Shown: positions 15,416 through 25,799, counted from the whole stretch's first letter. The stretch: 63,990 nucleotides of DNA, filler included, from Lenisia limosa (GCA_001655205.1; 17 parts of 17 records of this genome joined end to end with filler, not necessarily neighbours in it), one strand, 5' to 3'. Notes: generated by a model not told the origin, from the letters alone. Made by a program: numbers and translations.

Positions 15416-15629
15416 CTGAGGGGGGGTAAAACGAAGGGAATTTATGAAACAAAAAGCCCAAAANNNNNNNNNNNNNNNNNNNNNNNNNNNNNNNNNNNNN
15501 NNNNNNNTTAATTAATTAANNNNNNNNNNNNNNNNNNNNNNNNNNNNNNNNNNNNNNNNNNNNATGCCCTCTATATAAAAAGATAAAAGTCACACTAATA
15601 GTGCCCACTCCCCTATACGTACGGGCGAG

Positions 15630-16805
15630 GTGGCCGCTCTTTCACGAAACTTCGTGAGAAGCGTTTCGCACGCCTGACTCAACAGCCATCTGACCTCCTC
15701 CAACACAGAATTGGATGAAAAAGCCCAAACGACATAGAAGATTATGAACATTCTTGCAAAATTGCACGACCAACGATTAATCGAATACTCAGTATTTACA
15801 AGGCTATCTCTACCATATTGATACCAAGCACGATAGTATCGAGTGACCCTAGAGCCGACCGGACCGCTGCCTCGCGGGCGTTGTCAGCCGTAGGCACTAC
15901 GAGATTCTTCAGGTCGTTTTTGGCCGAATCTGGGCAGCCTCCTTGAAATAAACTGTAAATACTGGACACAAATGCTTTGAATTTGTCAGGCAAAACCTGA
16001 GTATTCAGAGTCGGTGCCTGTAAAACAGTTTTCAACTCCACATGACATCTTTTGACAGACTGTACAAGCTTTTGATTAGCGTCCTTGTCTGCCAAGGTTA
16101 GTAGTTCCTGTGGTGCTGTGGGAATCGTCAACGAACCATTGCCTACCACACCGGATGGGGCTCAAGGGCCTTCCCCAGCGCGAGGACTCAGATTGTACTG
16201 GCGGTTCAGATCAACGATGGTATTTCGAAGCTCCTCGACCTCCTGTCTCAGCCCCAGGTTCTCATATTCCAACTGGTCCAGACGCTGGCCTTTTTCGCTG
16301 AAGACGCCTTCTCCGTTTTCAAAAGTCCAGCGTAGGTATTCCTCACACCAACTGCCTTGGAAGCCAGCTTCTTCATTTCCGAAGGAATTGATAACTCAGT
16401 AGTCTCTGAGGCTGCAACCCTTTTAGCCGAAGCCTCAGTGGTTGCTGCCTCTTCTTCCACCTCCTCATCCACGGCGATTGGCTCATCGTCAAACAAGGCT
16501 TCTGATTCCACAATCGAAACTTCAGAGTCCTCCAAAGCCTGTTGGGCCTCGGAATCCTCAACGTCGCCCATGGAATTGGCCTTAGCCTCCTCCAACTCTG
16601 TCTCTTCGAACACCTCAATGACCTGCATCACTTCTTGGCGAACGTTCTCTTCATCCAACGAAGCATCCATAGCCATCCAAAGCTTCACGTTATCGTCGGT
16701 AAGGTGCGCGACCAGTGCAGCCTCTAGGTAGGAGGAATGTTTTGTCTTTGGCAAAACTGGATCAGAGTGGGTCTCTGACAAGGTAGTTGAATCTTCCTCT
16801 ACCAT
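15630..16805 (-). pseudogene. Degenerate acidic/coiled-coil ORF flanking the tyrosine recombinase locus
   Basis: ORF 16248-16805 shifts near 16400 into a frame reading GSWCEEYLRWTFENGEGVFSEKGQRLDQLEYENLGLRQEVEELR, then hits an in-frame TGA before continuing as ORF 15796-16149. Confidence 0.45.
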
Positions 16806-16973
16806 CTTTGGACGCGGGCGCCAGGGCCAATGTTACTCTATGATCGGGCTGTAAATGTTAGAAACTACCGTTGAATCGGTTCTCCTCAATCAAATCCTCA
16901 CAAAACCTTGACCCAATACTCCTTTCGAGGCGAACTCCGTCCACGGCGAACGACTCATCAGGAACAGCTGCCT

Positions 16974-17193
16974 TTGTTCAAGATAAGGTTAGTCTCTTGA
17001 TGTTATCTCAAGACGTAAAAGACTCAGGAAATCGGTTGCAACCCTCCTTTTTTTATCTCCTCCAACATAAAACAATGTCTACACACTGTGAGAACACCCG
17101 AAACTACAAACCCGAAAGGAGGAGGGTTGCGACCAATTTCCTGAGTCTTTAAGTCTTGAGATAACATCAAGAGACTAACCTTATCTTGAACAA
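16974..17193. repeat. ~74-bp near-perfect inverted repeat with 71-bp spacer
   Basis: Arm 16974-17048 is the reverse complement of arm 17120-17193 with about 4 differences. Confidence 0.9.
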
Positions 17194-17749
17194 TGGCGGC
17201 GGCACAAACACGTCATCACGTGTCCCAGAAGGATCTTGATGCATCTTGAAGTACTTGGCCATTCATATGTATTATCGTCACTCAAGCGAAAACACCCAGC
17301 AACCTTCAACAGAATATCTCGGGGATCAGTCGAGTTCAACAACATCATTGAGCACAAAGAAGAATGCGACAACCATATAACACATCCGTTTGTATCCGTA
17401 CTCTTTCAAAATTGTCTAGGATAATCTTCGAACTCATGGGATTGTTGAATTCAATATACAGTAATACTCGGGAATATCCTATCACTATATCCTACTTCAC
17501 CACCAATTGCCCTATGGGAGGGGAGCAAAAGTATGGAAGGACAAGCAAAATCAGATAATAATACAAGAAGATATGTGCTTTCTTCATAGATATCATATCA
17601 TGTTAAATAATAATATATTCTCCAATGTATAAGATTACTTTGTCAGATATTTTCAAAAGTGGTGAAATAATATTTTCACGTGGTGCTATGATGCATAAAG
17701 TTTATGTATATGCTACCGCGCAGAATTCCCGTAAATCATCCGTACTTCC

Positions 17750-17876
17750 GTAAATTATTATTTTTTCCACTTAAACCTGGGTATCTCAACAAAATTTAAA
17801 CCAAAAACTACATATTACATACAATAAAATTATAAAAACAAGTTTAAAAAATGTCTCAGCAAGGCTTTTATAGAAA
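17750..17876 (+). repeat. Copy of the ~125-bp repeat at 611-734, just upstream of the YR exons
   Basis: Visual alignment; contains ATGTCTCAGCAAGG at 17851. Confidence 0.85.
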
Positions 17877-18059
17877 GGCTTACTTGGCTTAGTGAAGATG
17901 TCCTTCACTTTTTGATGCTCGCCTTCCGGCCCTTCTCCATGGCTAAATGACTCAGACATTTTCATGATTAACAATCAGAGCGTTCACGTGTAACTTTGTT
18001 ATCGCCGAACTTTCACTTCTTGTCACCTTTTTAGGTTGAGGATCAGCCCTGAGACCGGC

Positions 18060-19950
18060 AGCTCCGAGAGTCTTACTGCAGAAACGTCCAAAATGGGAAT
18101 AGCGTTTCAATCTAAAGGGACTCATAAGGTTGGTGGTTATTTGAATGCTCTATTTGATACGTTTGATGATTAACTTGTTAGATCACCATGACTTTTGTTA
18201 GTGAGTTTGCAGCCTATCTCAAGAAAGTATTACGCCAAAAGAAATTTGAAACAGATTTTTAGCCAAGTGGGTTGGGTGTTTAGTGTTATTAGGAAAGGGG
18301 GCTACGGAAGTAGTCGTCGTTATGCTTTAAACCAACTGCTTTTATTCCTTCAGATGGCTTCATGAGCAAGAAGAAGCGCATCCTGGACAAGCTGTGGACT
18401 TCTTCTTCAAGTATATCAAGGAAAAGTCCAAGTCTGGAAAGTTGACGTTGAGATTTCAACGTTTCTGTTTGAATCCTTGTTATGAATAACTGACCTGATT
18501 TTAGAAAAAGACCATTGGTTCCCGCCGCTCCTCCTGCCAGCGCTTTCTTGGTGCTGCCGGTTTTGACACACTTAAGGTGAAGGCTTCCCTTGGCAACCCA
18601 TCCAACCAGGACAAGTTCATTATCATGCAGGCGAAGGAGACTGCTGCAAGAGTAGGCTTATTTGTTTTTATGATGTTGGGCCTTTTGTTTTCAGTTGGAT
18701 GTTAACCCATATGCACAAGATCATATAGCCGACTTATGAGTCGAAATAATGAAAGAAGGTACGAAGGTTCATCCCGTGTGTATCAAAGTATCATTAAAAC
18801 TTGTCGGAGTGGATATGAGGTATCATATCACTGCGTGGACAATGATAGTTCACGTGAAAAAGATCCAACAAATGATATGAGTGTGAGTGTATTTTGACTG
18901 CTATCAGAATGAACAAGCCAAGCTCGATGAAGTCTTTGAGAGCCGCCAATACAGTGAAGGTATGTACCCGAGTAAACTTAACCTTTTCATTCCTCAAAGT
19001 CAGAACCGATAGGACCAATGTGGAGTCATCGTTTTCTTCTGTTTTGTCTAGTTTTGAAGGTCAGAAATGGCGGTGCAGGACTCTCCTTCCCGGTCATTTG
19101 TGGCTTGCCGTCGCGGCGATCGACCAACTTCCCTCCATCAGATTCCGCTCCTCCGCAGTCAATGACCTGGCCCGGGCGTACTTCAAGGTATTTGGGCTAT
19201 CAGGTTGATCTTCATTCCATAAGAGTTACAACCTCAAGGCCACTTTAGCCCTCAAATTTCAATATAATAGAGCTTTTAATAATTTTGTCATGAAATATTC
19301 TTCACAATGATGTCACTCCTATTCCGTACGTCCAAAAAAGTTTACCTTTGCTGTGGAAAAGCGTATTGTAATTATATTTTTTTTCAAGGCGCTCAACCTA
19401 CTGATGTCCGACCTTGGAATTCGTATCTCATGTGCCATCAGCATTCAGCTCTCGTGGTTGAATGTGTCCGAGAATTCCATTTCCCTCTCCATCACATGGG
19501 GTCCCCACCTCATGAACCATGGAAAGAATGCCAATAAAGCTCGTGAGTGGTGATTTTTGCTATTTAATAAATATCAAACAATTACTACCTCCTCCAAAGG
19601 TATCCTTTTTTTTTGAAAAAGTGGTGATGATTTCCTTGTCCCCATACCCCCTCTAGACAACACATCAACCTTTCTGGAACTAAGAAAGGCCGACCACCAC
19701 GGTGGAGAGAACGGGAAGATCTCCGGCTACCTCTTTCCGGAGCTCGTCAATGGACGGACACGCCCCAGCCTCCATCTCCAACTTGGAAACGTGGATGGCA
19801 CGGGTGTGGAAGTCCGTGCCAGGCTTCGAGGACGTTACCTTCCACTCCACCCAGAAAGGCGCCACCTTTGCCAACATGTGTGAAGGCCTCTCCAATGAGG
19901 ACATTGAGCAGTGGGGGGGGGTTACAATTGGATGTTTTTCCTTCTAAATT
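18060..19950 (+). mobile_element. Degenerate intron-containing tyrosine recombinase (Crypton-like)
   Basis: Spliced AVNDLARAYFK|ALNLLMSDLGIRISCAISIQLSWL matches YR box A (Arg codon 19422-19424). It is followed by HGKNANK, GYLFP and TFHSTQKGATFANMCEGLSNEDIEQWGG (box B with HxxR changed to HxxQ, 19843-19854). There is an in-frame stop near 18259 and a frameshift near 19750; the catalytic Tyr was not found. Confidence 0.65.
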
Positions 19951-20446
19951 TATTGAGCAATACAATTCAAGTGTGTAACTTGAAATAACGATAATTCTTC
20001 AAAACCACCATTTAGAGGGTGGGGGGGATCAATTTATTCAACATCTAATTCAATGTCAAGAAAATTGGTATTACATTTATCTTTTCTTTGTTGTTGTACT
20101 TAAAAAGTAGACTTAGTTTTCCGTAATGTCCGTCCTATTAAGATATAATAGTGTTTATTAAGAGCATTATTAATAAATATAGTGCTTGAAAATAGTGTTT
20201 TCATTATCAAGATCACTACTTCTAAGTAATCATAATTCATAATCATTAATGGCACTAAAAATAATTATTGTTTTGTTAGTGCCCTTCTAAAAATAAATCT
20301 CACTATAATAATAATAAAACTAATAACAACTATTAATATATATCTTAATAGTGCTATATTATGATTTGTATTCCCAACTGTGATTTGATTGTCATCTTGT
20401 TCTGTTATTTTTAGCCAGTATTTAACTTCAAATATTTACATTCTCA

Positions 20447-21230
20447 TGGATTCAGTCTCCAAGGCTGGCTCAGCTCAAACGGGGTCATGTTCGAACCTAT
20501 TTCCAGCCCTCCCTCAATGACCTCACCCTTGGATTGCCAATCCACCTCTCGCTGGTAAACAACTCCGTCTCTCTGCCAGAGTTCCCCTCTGTTGATGCCG
20601 CTTTCGTCGAGGTCAGCCCTTCATCCCCACTTCCCCCATCCGATGAGTTCTTCAAGGCGCACCCGATCCCCCTCATCCCCATCGCGAAGGACTACCTTGG
20701 GCCCGCTGAGGGCATTGAGGTTCCTGAGCCCCCTATTTTGTCAAGTTCTACATCATCACCGGCCCTGTATGAGTGTCCTGCCTTTACCCCTTCCAACACT
20801 GACGTACCTCCTTTTCAAACCAGCTCTTCTCCGCCAAGGCCTTAGATGACTGACTCTCCAAATGTGGTAATTGTTGGTCACTTAGGTTCTTATGAGAAGT
20901 GGACTTCTTCCCAAAAGAAGCAGTTTCGGTGTTTCAAGAGGGTTCAGGAGGGAGTCGACGTCCTCGGCCGCGCACATTTCCCGGAGGATATTGGTTATAG
21001 CTCTCTGGAGAAGATTATAAGGAGGGAGACATTCCGCGATGAAAGTGGGCTGCTTTGCGGCAAGAGTGGAGTTCGGCTGAAGTTCACGCCAAAGGTTGAA
21101 CTCACCATGAGGCCAAGTTTCAATGCCACCCCAGTATCACCATGAGCGCATCTCAGCTGGAAGAGATTGTTGATAAGGCTGCGAAGAAAAGTGTCGAAGG
21201 TTAGTGAGTTGCTCAATTGTCATAAATACG
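20447..21230 (+). pseudogene. Degenerate Pro/Ser-rich ORF downstream of the YR
   Basis: One frame runs across ORFs 20534-20845 and 20846-21145, broken only by TAG and TGA, then shifts into MSASQLEEIVDKAAKKSVE before a GTTAGT donor. Confidence 0.45.
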
Positions 21231-22172
21231 TCATATGCTGTGTCCATCTATTGGTTTAACTTTTTTAGAAGCTGTCCGACTCTTCCGCATGAGTATCTGA
21301 TTGATGTGTGTATCGAAAAACACAAAATGTATCACTCACACTGCTTTTTTTGTTCATTTTTCCTTTGTATCAAATAGTTCAATAAATGAGGTTTATATTC
21401 GTTTTACATACAACACAATAAAAACAATCTGTAGGCCNNNNNNNNNNNNNNNNNNNNNNNNNNNNNNNNNNNNNNNNNNNNNNNNNNNNNNNNNNNNNNN
21501 NNNNNNNNNNNNNNNNNNNNNNNNNNNNNNNNNNNNNNNNNNNNNNNNNNNAATGGTCATTATATCAGTTTGAAGAAAAAGTGAAAGGGGAAAAGATAGC
21601 AGCACAGAATATTAGTGAAATACAACTTTTCAACGAAACTTATAATTACTATAAGCAAAGGGGCGGGAAGGGACGCAATCCTTGTAACAATCACTGCTTT
21701 TGAAAGAGCCACTAGCACCCACAATACCGTCTCTAACGCCCTTGTTTTCTTACTTTTTATCAGTGGCCAAAGGAATGTCTTACTGCCGCTTGAATGAGCC
21801 AATCTCCAAAAAATGGTTTTGAAAGCTGCTCGGGAAGTTTTTTATCAATTCTCAAGTTTTTTCTCTCTCATTTTCCCCTCTCTTCTCTTATTCTTTATGT
21901 GGCAATGAAGATTTCTATTTTTTCACTTTACAAACTTTGATATCGAATGAATACAGCGCGTATGTAATATACTATTTGACTTTGATTGAATGATAAACTA
22001 AAGAAAGATTGGGGTTGGATTGGGGGACAATGGAAAGAGGCAAGTTGGAGTAGTGGTTGGGTTGGGTATACACAATTGCTACGCACAAACGATATAACAA
22101 ATTAAAAACAAAGCTGCAACAAAAGAGAAGAAGAAAATAAGTGAAAAAAAAGAAAAAAGTAAAAAATAAAGA

Positions 22173-23200
22173 TCAGGCCAAGATTGGACGAAGATCGTGG
22201 AGATCCGGGGAGGAAAAAATCCTGGGTATGCTGGAATTTGTTGTAGAAGGAGAAGTTGAGCTGTTTGCTGTCTCAAAAAGGTCACTGTTTATGCCAACAA
22301 CCGATGAGTTGGAGGAAAATCCTGATTTGTTGTCACAGCGAATAAAGCTGGAGCTTAGAGGTGAGACTACTTCATTTAATTGTGGCATCCTTGTTCCAAA
22401 TATCTCATCAAGCCAGTTGTCAACGACCAAGTGAAGGCAATATTTTGTCAAGATTAATGGATGTTCAGAAGAATCAAGCCGTTTCTTACGTGCATACGTG
22501 AACACAAGCACCAGCGGCTATTCCTCATGTAGTACGCCTTCAACCTTAAGGGTCAAGGAGTGGCCAGCAATGTAAGTGAATATTTCTTTTTGTGACTATT
22601 AAGCTGATTGAATCGCTGTCCAAAACCGGTATGACTATGACGTCTGGCCACATCAACAAAACCTGTATTGTCCGCCTTAAGACCGGAGCTGACGCAGAGA
22701 AAAGAAAGGAGAAAGAGAAGAAAATGAAGAAAAGAGAAAACGAAAGAAAAGGAAGGAAAGGGAGTCGCGCCTCCAGCCAGGGCAAGAAGGAGTTCCCAGC
22801 GAACAATGGTTTCTGTAGCGGAGCACAACATCTCAAATTTGTTTCGTTTTTATTTATTTTTCTTGTATCTGTTTCTTGTATATATCCCTCTAATTATGTT
22901 GCCCAAATGTGTATCGGAACCCCAGGTTCTTGGGAAAATTATTCTTCCCAGATATTTTGATACATTTCAAGTTCAAGTTCAAGTTCAAGTTCAAGTTGTT
23001 GGCTAGAAGGCGTAAAAATGAGATGAAGAAGAGAGTTCCAACCGATACAGTTAATAGTAAGTGGGCGATGCGAAATATTTCCTGTAATGTTCTAGCCTCT
23101 TCAGAAGGCCGACCACCAAAGCAGTCTGAAGAGGATCACCTGAGTTGCCAGGAAGATGTCAAGTTCCAAAATGAAGTCTGATTCAAATTGCATATTTACC
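22173..23200 (-). CDS. Putative multi-exon gene with Ser-rich C-terminus, unknown
   Basis: Terminal ORF VDNWLDEIFGTRMPQLNEVVSPLSSS...HDLRPILA* plus upstream exon-like segments. Confidence 0.3.
22966..22995. repeat. (TTCAAG)5 microsatellite
   Basis: Directly visible. Confidence 0.95.
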
Positions 23201-25660
23201 CCTTTAGATAATCATGAGGAGTGGTTTAGAGCGACAGGCAACGTCTTGGGTTGTTCTTGTGTTGCAACTGATTTCTGTGCTTACTGAACAAGGTGGGGGT
23301 CTTATTGGTTAATATTTAGCTATTGGAACACTCACTCCTTCATGGGACTCTTTAAACTTGGCAATGTTTCTGAGGCTTACGGGTATACTGTTGTTTTTAG
23401 TTTCAATGGCCTGGGCACAACTGGGTGTGGGTTTGTTTCAAAAAACACAGGTATGTCTTGGGTATATCAGCGAAGCTGTTTCTTACAGTATTTAGTGTTT
23501 TTTGACGTGTGTCGGAATGGCTTGTATTGTTTCGGCTTTGTCTGACGTAAAAACGCCCCCTGGATACCTGCTAATCCAGTTTTATTTTCTTTTTTCTTCA
23601 ATTGTTATGTCGTATGGTACGCAAGGGCGCTTGTCTGAGGAGCTTTTCCTTATGTATTCCTCAATATTAGTTCATTTGCCTCATTAAGTTTTCTGGAAAA
23701 GTTATGATCTTTTTAGATTACAACCTCAGCTTTGTTTTACTTCTTTCAGGTTTTTCGTTTTTCTATGGAGTCATTGCTACCACACCTTCAACTGTAATTC
23801 TATTGATTGGGCTTGTTATTAACCGGCAATACACATGGTCACCAATCCTATTAATTAGTCATTGTGTCGTTTTGGTAGTCCTCATTTTGTTTGCTGGTCG
23901 AAGAGCTGTTGGTATACCGTGTCTTAACATTTTAGATGGTTGATTTTGAACTTTCATTCTATGCTCGACAAAATTTTTCCAAGAGAGTTAGGGCAATATC
24001 AGTTTGTAGTCCTTCTTCTTTACTTTTTTTAGTCCGTTGTAATGGAAGTTGTCCCGTCATCTGTAACCTCAAGGCTTCTCCAATCACCTGGCTCAAGACC
24101 GGCTGATCATTTCAAAAGCGTTGGAATTGACACATCGTAATATTTTAGACAACTATTATTCACATCCAAATTGATGGGCTTGCTGGAAGTGCTGATAATC
24201 CAGATATGTTAGCATGTTTTATTGGTTTGTGTTTTGAGTTTATTCATTGTGTAGCTCAGACATTTCTTTTAATTGATCATGTAATTAATGCTGATAGGAG
24301 AGTTTTTAAGGTTTATAGTTGGGATTCTTATTTTCCAGGCTGAACAGGTCAATGATAGTATAGTTGCAGTGGTGGGTTCACTTTCAAATGAAGTGAGGCT
24401 TCGGTGCAAAGTTTCTGAACAATTGGCAGTGGAATTCGGCCTCAATGTGCTGCTTGCTGTGAGTCTGATCTGCTTAATTTTACTCTACAAGGCCAGAGCA
24501 TCAATACACCTCACAAAAGCTTCCACAAGGATACGTTGTGGAATTGTCAGTGGCAGGTATGCAGCAGTGTTCTGTTTAATATTACTAAGTGTTCATGCTG
24601 GAATTATTGGTGGAAAGCGCTCCTTACAATATCAAATGGCAGGTGATATTCTCAATTTCGCACGCCAGCTTTGTAATACCACTCAATGGGGTATGTAACA
24701 ATTGTGCATTTATTTTAGGACAACTGCAAGTGTGTCAGGTGACAGCCGCTTTTCTTGCAGCCCAACCTTCATTACCCCGTCGTCCTGAGTCTGTCATGGC
24801 CATTCATATCAGGGCGGTTCATCCCTTCACTCCTGTCCCACCATCAAATGATTTATGTCTTCTGGTTCAATCTAGTGGATATTTAGCGCTCAAGGGAAAA
24901 GGTGACTAGGAGGAAATGATTTCATAGATAATTTTATCAGAATACATAGGCACTTGATACTCTTAGGTCTCCAGCTTGCATTTTTGGTTCAGTACCCCCC
25001 TGACTGCCGACCAACATCTTTACCTCATATTACTGAACTTCTTGTACCGAAAGTCACCCCAGTTATAGAAGCGTCTGACATGATGGGTCCAAACTACCAG
25101 CCTATTAACACACGGGTAAGTAGAAAGGTTGAGTAGTTGACATAAAGGTATTACGACCACCTTCAGCCCAAGCAATTGCGGACCAGAGAAGGTCTCGTAG
25201 ACGGCATCGAACTCCTCTTCCTGGTGAAGCGTTTTGCAACTCACCAAAACCAACGAACTTTACCCCAAATGTTAGTGCTCTCAATCTCCCCCCATTCATC
25301 TGTCTAGTCCCTCTTCAAACAAGAATACAGCGCTGACTCCTGGTTTGTCTTATTTTTTGTAATGTCCGGGTGAATAGGAAAATTTTTTTGTTATGTTTAA
25401 TTATACTCCCTGCTCCCCTACTTCAATCATTTACCCCCCCCCCCTGGTATGCTTGGGACGGNNNNNNNNNNNNNNNNNNNNNNNNNNNNNNNNNNNNNNN
25501 NNNNNNNNNNNNNNNNNNNNNNNNNNNNNNNNNNNNNNNNNNNNNNNNNNTATGACCGTTAATAAGTCGAATTTTTTAACATTTCCCTTACTTTTTTAAC
25601 GCCTCACAGGTTTGTTTGGGTGATCGAGCGGTGGTGGGACTCTTCAAAGGCTGGCTCGGG
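23200..25660 (+). CDS. Putative multi-pass membrane protein; weak resemblance to a degenerate hybrid histidine kinase
   Basis: Several hydrophobic exons (23340-23940), then VVGSLSNEVR, GDILNFAR, VHPFT and a final WVIERWWD, loosely matching the HisKA/HATPase/receiver order. Confidence 0.3.
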
Positions 25661-25799
25661 CTTATTTTTGTTTTTTTGCGGTTGTCATCTGCTTTNNNNN
25701 NNNNNNNNNNNNNNNNNNNNNNNNNNNNNNNNNNNNNNNTTAATTAATTAANNNNNNNNNNNNNNNNNNNNNNNNNNNNNNNNNNNNNNNNNNNNATCA

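Follow-up and report, generated by a model that had tools for sequence, protein, structure and literature searches.

What became of the intron-split gene in the middle of this stretch of Lenisia limosa DNA (GCA_001655205.1; the window is the whole stretch of 63,990 nucleotides, filler included), and did its neighbours travel with it? The initial annotation had proposed that positions 15630-21230 are what is left of a composite element, dead and no shorter than 5.6 kb, which was mobilised by a tyrosine recombinase and carried two decayed open reading frames (ORFs) as cargo. Having analysed the piece 15564-25695, we favour with moderate confidence a simpler reading, in which a eukaryotic tyrosine recombinase gene of transposon type, Crypton-like and with spliceosomal introns, has survived here as a non-functional relic. 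The gene would span at least exons E4 to E9, at about 18505-20845 on the + strand. It would be an ordinary transposon relic, and we see no sign of a larger cargo-carrying element.

Exon-intron structure

The piece is eukaryotic and not human-looking, with introns that are short (53-256 nt, and one of 545 nt) and AT-rich; tRNA and Rfam matches were absent throughout 15564-25695. On the + strand, 18505-19910 is a series of GC-richer exons (GC content 0.46-0.60) alternating with AT-rich GT..AG introns (0.26-0.39), and splice-phase bookkeeping places the four successive junctions from E4 to E8 in frame. The parts of the locus, from 5' to 3', are as follows.

18093-18128, + strand: E1, possible 5' exon with an ATG start
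from 18182, + strand: E2, possible 5' exon
18354-18440, + strand: E3, possible 5' exon
18505-18651, + strand: E4, N-terminal domain; AG acceptor, GTAGGC donor, phase 0 to 0, GC 0.53 against 0.34-0.38 in the flanking introns
18908-18959, + strand: E5, in phase with E4 and E6
19060-19187, + strand: E6, junction codon GGT, GC 0.60
19389-19549, + strand: E7, with box I; donor at 19543 (GTGAGT) or 19550 (GTGATT)
19622-19920, + strand: E8, with a YLFPEL stretch and box II; acceptor at 19622 or 19657, donor at 19911 (GTGGGG) or 19921 (GTTACA)
19911-20455, + strand: intron 8, long and AT-rich (545 nt, GC 0.27); contains short AT-rich repeats
20456-20845, + strand: E9, probable 3' exon; G-W (20463-20468), then L-S-S, further on a Pro/Ser-rich tail, and TAG at 20843-20845
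20846-21145, + strand: downstream open frame of 99 amino acids (ORF99)
21142-21200 and 21269-21300, + strand: downstream two-exon open frame, with AATAAA at 21381-21386

The agreement in phase is supportive and not decisive, since intron 7 has a second in-phase choice in which donor 19550 and acceptor 19622 retain a DFLVPIPP stretch. Exons E1 to E3 were placed by phase bookkeeping and the model is unsure there: no GT-AG pair joins E3 to E4 in frame, so that either the model is wrong in E1-E3 or the gene carries one further lesion. The repeats within intron 8, the longest of the introns, include an AATAGTG-type motif and runs of TAATCA and ATA.

Recombinase-like motifs and lesions

The motif strings quoted in the initial annotation (box I, HSTQKGA and IEQWGG) are present on the + strand at the places given for them. 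Box I, LLMSDLGIRISC, is located in the exon 19389-19542 with its arginine codon at 19422-19424, and E7 as a whole carries GIRIS and LSWLNV, 11 residues apart and both within 19416-19466, together with a candidate lysine at 19524-19526. This is the succession that defines box I of tyrosine recombinases (G-x-R-x-S/E, then L-x-W-x-D/N-I/V), and each of the patterns G[LIVM]R.S and L.W.[DN][LIVM] occurs about once or less per shuffle of all 13,633 six-frame residues. In E8, HSTQKGA lies at 19843-19863 and IEQWGG at 19903-19920. Here box II departs from H-x-x-R, as had also been read before: the sequence is HSTQ (19843-19854), in which the histidine (19843-19845) is kept and glutamine (19852-19854) replaces the second arginine. 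The same exon changes frame near a C-run, within about 19759-19773, and all the frame changes that we propose fall in windows with short homopolymer runs (C4, G4, A5). The damage to the gene is real, and consists of the E8 frameshift, HxxQ in place of HxxR, and 5' exons for which no in-frame junction exists.

The split gene very probably originated from a tyrosine recombinase, and indirect evidence supports this part of the earlier proposal. A search of the box-II exon (19768-19929) against a language-model atlas, a lead-grade method, returned PF00589 in its top clusters (0.94, 178 shared features, recognition 3142); the family was found in 20 of the 30 matches, and all ten of the best named matches were concordant. 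A chance match to PF00589 is unlikely, because the family had been named beforehand. In a BLASTP comparison with Cre, the best high-scoring segment pair (HSP) was box II itself, aligned with Cre 289-316 (H289 to G314) with 11 of 28 residues identical and an E value of 0.021. Furthermore, box I, the lysine, box II, and the modelled G-W and candidate tyrosine discussed below follow one another in the correct order and with family-typical spacing. When box I and box II are set by eye beside the published rows (the alignment in Additional file 4 of PMC3212892), they resemble the DIRS1-group and Crypton recombinases in both residues and spacing.

The right-hand ORF as a probable 3' exon

The right-hand ORF (+ strand, 20456-21145) had been taken for a separate, decayed cargo gene. 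It is damaged as described, since a TAG stands in frame at 20843-20845 and the frame changes again near 21140, and it is most likely the recombinase gene's own last coding exon with a Pro/Ser-rich tail, and not cargo. A splice from 19910 to 20456 (CA/GT...AG/T; donor CA/GTGGGG) is in phase and yields the junction ...DIEH-LQGWLSS. This modelled splice, across an intron 8 that may contain an old insertion, sets glycine and tryptophan at +25 and +26 from the box II histidine, as in Cre (H289/G314/W315), and the W-x-S of E9 is, by eye, the form found in all Crypton and DIRS rows.

The catalytic tyrosine exon, reported missing in the initial annotation, would then have a candidate. If the frame changes in a G-run (about 20476-20481), the sequence continues with ...VRTYF, and we infer that the tyrosine encoded at 20498-20500 is the catalytic one; at 10-11 residues after the tryptophan, it is spaced as in CryptonS and DIRS-1_DPu. 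In tyrosine recombinases a histidine or tryptophan is expected about 26 residues after the box II histidine, and the tyrosine nucleophile 9-11 residues later; here the first distance is obtained only with the modelled splice, and the tyrosine only past the frame change. An alternative, lesion-free splice from donor 19921 reaches the same tyrosine and loses the G-W register; with both splices the right-hand ORF would be the last coding exon of the recombinase gene. For E9 and its tyrosine, alignment tools give no independent support.

The TAG at 20843-20845 may be the gene's normal stop codon. A 42-nt GT-AG intron that would remove it was rejected as GC-rich, unlike the genuine local introns; this and two further tiny introns rejected in the left-hand gene (38 and 45 nt) have a GC content of 0.47-0.67 by hand count. 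The open frames downstream (20846-21300) either end the recombinase transcript or form a small ORF of their own. Pfam, PHROGs and NCBIfam gave no family or homologue for them, and a word search with ORF99 was empty; with its length window of 0.55-1.75, such a search is blind to full-length kin. An AlphaFold2 model of ORF99 (predicted local distance difference test, pLDDT, 37) was too poor for a fold search.

The left-hand gene and the palindrome

Two further features lie upstream of the recombinase gene.

15796-16805, - strand: left gene, divergent, in a three-frame reading
16967-17200, no strand: near-perfect palindrome of 234 nt (arms of about 90 nt, loop of about 60 nt), between the two divergent genes

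The left gene starts at the ATG at 16805 with an acidic N-terminal ORF of 185 amino acids (16248-16805, P0001), continues after a frame change, between 16395 and 16251, as a clear coiled coil of leucine-zipper type (16165-16395) and then meets an in-frame TGA (16162-16164), which is followed by a helical C-terminal part of 121 amino acids (15799-16161) and a stop codon at 15796-15798. The damage noted earlier in this neighbour is thus confirmed. The frame change and the TGA would disappear with two GT-AG introns, of 38 and 45 nt; both were rejected, and we take the lesions as real because these introns are GC-rich, unlike the local ones. The only Pfam matches of the gene were sub-threshold coiled-coil ones, a PDB search returned no match, and a word search with P0001, under the length window given above, recovered only itself, on one 30,995-bp contig. 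The AlphaFold2 model of the C-terminal part is a helical bundle whose pLDDT of 61 is too poor for a fold search. The left gene is probably a separate, divergently oriented, damaged orphan, tied to the recombinase by proximity and common decay only.

The palindrome, whose DNA fold has an energy of -84 kcal/mol (z -18), is probably a foldback or MITE-like (miniature inverted-repeat transposable element) insertion. Neither its arm nor E7 has a copy in the JGI metagenomes.

Around it, two - strand frames (17181-17372 and 16861-16977) fuse into one, on a hand reading, if the palindrome is removed, as with a foldback or MITE insertion into an ORF. In Pfam, an open piece of 74 amino acids on the same strand (17184-17405) matches SNAD1, a family of AID/APOBEC-like deaminases, below threshold (E 0.011; 16 bits, where the cutoff is 25).

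Which kind of element?

Every open piece of 15564-21437, up to the assembly gap that starts at 21438, was without a match to reverse transcriptase (RT), ribonuclease H (RNase H), methyltransferase, integrase or DDE families, so that the earlier observation of no RT or RNase H is borne out over these 5.9 kb. Within this interval the locus has the YR-only (tyrosine recombinase-only) composition of a Crypton, with neither RT nor DDE, and it lacks the adjacent RT/RNase H/methyltransferase ORF and the inverted terminal or internal complementary repeats (ITRs/ICRs) of DIRS1-like elements. The sole large inverted repeat is the upstream palindrome, which does not bracket the recombinase gene. A 24-nt direct repeat (17815-17838 and 21404-21427, 79% identical, 3589 nt apart, core TTACATACAA) encloses the recombinase gene alone; its right copy abuts the assembly gap, and it is at about chance level for AT-rich DNA. 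A Starship Captain, one of the families proposed earlier for checking, should have a DUF3435-type recombinase at the 5' end of its element and tens of kb of cargo; no exon matched the profile PF11917, and the motif form is Crypton/DIRS-like. Nor was there a match to PF12012 (DUF3504), and the box-II exon has no relatives among 1.84 billion proteins.

Introns are lost when an element is copied by way of RNA, and the introns of this gene therefore argue against a retroelement copy. Given these introns and the lack of RT, RNase H, methyltransferase and DDE matches, a DIRS-type copy is unlikely despite the DIRS1-like motifs. What is left as the best fit is a DNA element of Crypton-like kind, or a gene that was domesticated from such an element.

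Crypton transposons (CryptonA/I/S/F; Goodwin 2003; Kojima and Jurka 2011, PMC3212892) occur as repeated copies bounded by direct repeats of 4-6 bp. The likeness to them lies in the recombinase as sole recognisable enzyme without RT, in the spliceosomal introns, in the series G-x-R-x-S ... K ... H-S-x-R ... G-x-W-x-S ... Y as modelled, and in a C-terminal extension past the candidate tyrosine, as in CryptonS and CryptonF. The locus differs from them in having no Pfam DUF3504 or GCR1_C match, glutamine as its second arginine and a broken frame, and its box II, HST(R/Q), is the DIRS1-group form, whereas the Crypton rows have HS[FLA]R or H-x-x-R. The closest match by eye is DIRS-1_DPu of Daphnia pulex (PMC3266345), with 8 of 24 box I residues identical, ungapped, from the arginine on, with HST, GLS and W-x-S in common around box II (again by eye), with the same spacing from LF to HST (35 residues), and, as modelled, with the same spacings from histidine to tryptophan (26) and from tryptophan to the candidate tyrosine (11). 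Unlike DIRS1-like elements, however, the locus has introns and neither a GAG-YR-RT/RH/MT arrangement nor a bracketing ITR/ICR pair. Cre of phage P1 shares the box II alignment and, in the modelled splice, a tryptophan, not a histidine, as the fifth residue of the active site, equally far from the histidine of box II; it has otherwise no detectable similarity, and is prokaryotic and intronless. Finally, the domesticated DUF3504 genes (ZMYM2-4, KCTD1, QRICH1, WOC) are likewise intron-rich, recombinase-derived and devoid of the second catalytic arginine, and differ in that the locus has no PF12012 match, contains frame changes and has no conserved orthologues that we could find.

We tentatively propose that the intact protein would have cut and rejoined DNA via an R-K-H-R-W-Y active site, and that a DNA element of Crypton-like kind would thereby have moved by way of a circular intermediate. 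This copy would have lost that ability through the exchange of the second arginine for glutamine, one or two frame changes in the catalytic exons and the 5' exons that no longer join.

Alternative explanations

Several observations weigh against the reading as a recombinase relic. Profile searches were blank: Pfam, PHROGs and NCBIfam, run on every exon and flanking piece, gave nothing above noise, and PF00589, one of the profiles named earlier for checking the recombinase, matched no single exon in Pfam. Single exons and ORFs found no match in the PDB with phmmer, and hhalign gave no signal on the exons. A local hidden Markov model (HMM) built from six tyrosine recombinases (Cre, lambda Int, XerC, XerD, FimE and HP1 Int) and run with --max over 309 open pieces did not make the recombinase exons stand out, and E8 read through with X at its break remained without signal. 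The box-II piece, searched with phmmer against the 1.84 billion proteins, recovered only spurious repeat proteins, the six matches (NACHT-LRR, Flg_new, BNR) being rejected as scores summed over many weak repeat stretches. Moreover, the tyrosine requires a frame change and its splice site was picked after the motif had been seen, phase-consistent junctions can be obtained in more than one way, the comparison with Crypton and DIRS rows was made by eye, and no second copy or element end is known. The atlas search with the box-I exon was empty, box I gave no HSP with Cre, and a word search with E7, under the length window given above, found no relatives. Taken at face value, the blank HMM, hhalign and phmmer tests on single exons would suit an unrelated, decayed multi-exon gene with chance recombinase-like strings; the ease of over-reading motifs is apparent from our own early reading of E3 as SAM-like, which was dropped as E3 cannot be joined in frame to E4. 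We nonetheless regard this as improbable, since box II led the atlas search to the family named in advance, the Cre HSP sits at the homologous site, and box I, lysine, box II, G-W and the candidate tyrosine stand in the right order at family-typical distances. Exon-sized fragments of divergent recombinases were missed by all the profile searches used here, and the language-model search still finds them.

A recombinase origin is also compatible with a host gene that was domesticated from a transposon recombinase, as ZMYM and KCTD1 were from Cryptons, and kept for DNA binding and not for catalysis; it would now be a pseudogene, or be intact and marred by homopolymer assembly errors. The many introns, the ATG-started 5' exon and the AATAAA downstream would fit such a gene, as would the homopolymer runs near every proposed frame change, a TAG at 20843 that could be a normal stop, the neighbouring P0001 ORF without relatives on its single contig, and the loss of the second arginine, which has been reported for domesticated DUF3504 genes (PMC3212892). 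Against this, PF12012 does not match, the box-II exon has no conserved relative among the proteins searched, E3 and E4 do not join in frame, and four-base runs are seldom mis-assembled, so that we hold domestication to be unlikely, if the most credible of the alternatives. Less credible still is the composite element of the initial annotation, in which the left and right ORFs were cargo travelling with the recombinase in one dead element of at least 5.6 kb. Stops or frame changes do occur in the recombinase gene with its tail as well as in the left gene, the left gene lacks relatives, as is often the case for orphan transposable element genes, and a large palindrome lies between the two genes. 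However, the right ORF can be spliced in phase to the recombinase gene, whose G-W...Y motif it holds, the left gene is on the opposite strand with its own start, and no repeats bracket the 5.6 kb, the sole bracketing repeat (17815/21404) enclosing the recombinase gene alone at chance level. The claim of two cargo genes in one large element is accordingly not supported, and we prefer the recombinase relic with its own 3' exon beside a divergent orphan.

If the relic is what we take it for, a eukaryotic genome gains one further decayed recombinase copy of Crypton/DIRS type, which helps repeat annotation and has little other use. It is a distant prospect that an RT-less, intron-bearing gene with DIRS1-like motifs represents a Crypton-like lineage sister to the DIRS1 recombinases, or the first domesticated DIRS recombinase, possibly tied to the palindrome and the coiled-coil gene. 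Were it true, a sister lineage of this kind would bear on how tyrosine recombinase retrotransposons arose. The locus would gain weight if copies across the genome revealed an element that has introns and a recombinase of DIRS1 type but no RT; such an element would matter more because the origin of these retrotransposons from Crypton-like DNA elements is still open.

Other observations

Scans of viral contigs with Cre and lambda Int returned near-identical copies only, of no use for a profile. The sole match to box II in the viral scan (L168) was rejected, as it is a picorna-like RNA-dependent RNA polymerase polyprotein that shares only the common 8-mer VPGFEDVT. This IMG/VR contig (1-3002), a fragment of a picorna-like RNA virus, consists of a single open frame in which RNA_helicase and RdRP_1 domains are recognised.

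To the right of the gap, 23200-25300 on the + strand holds a multi-exon gene with several hydrophobic, membrane-span-like exons and no Pfam match, which, in contrast to the genes on its left, apparently has no obvious lesions. Between the two lie low-complexity arrays, rich in purines and of AAGAAA type, together with a perfect (TTCAAG)x5 microsatellite, at 22102-22181, 22698-22761 and 22966-22997.

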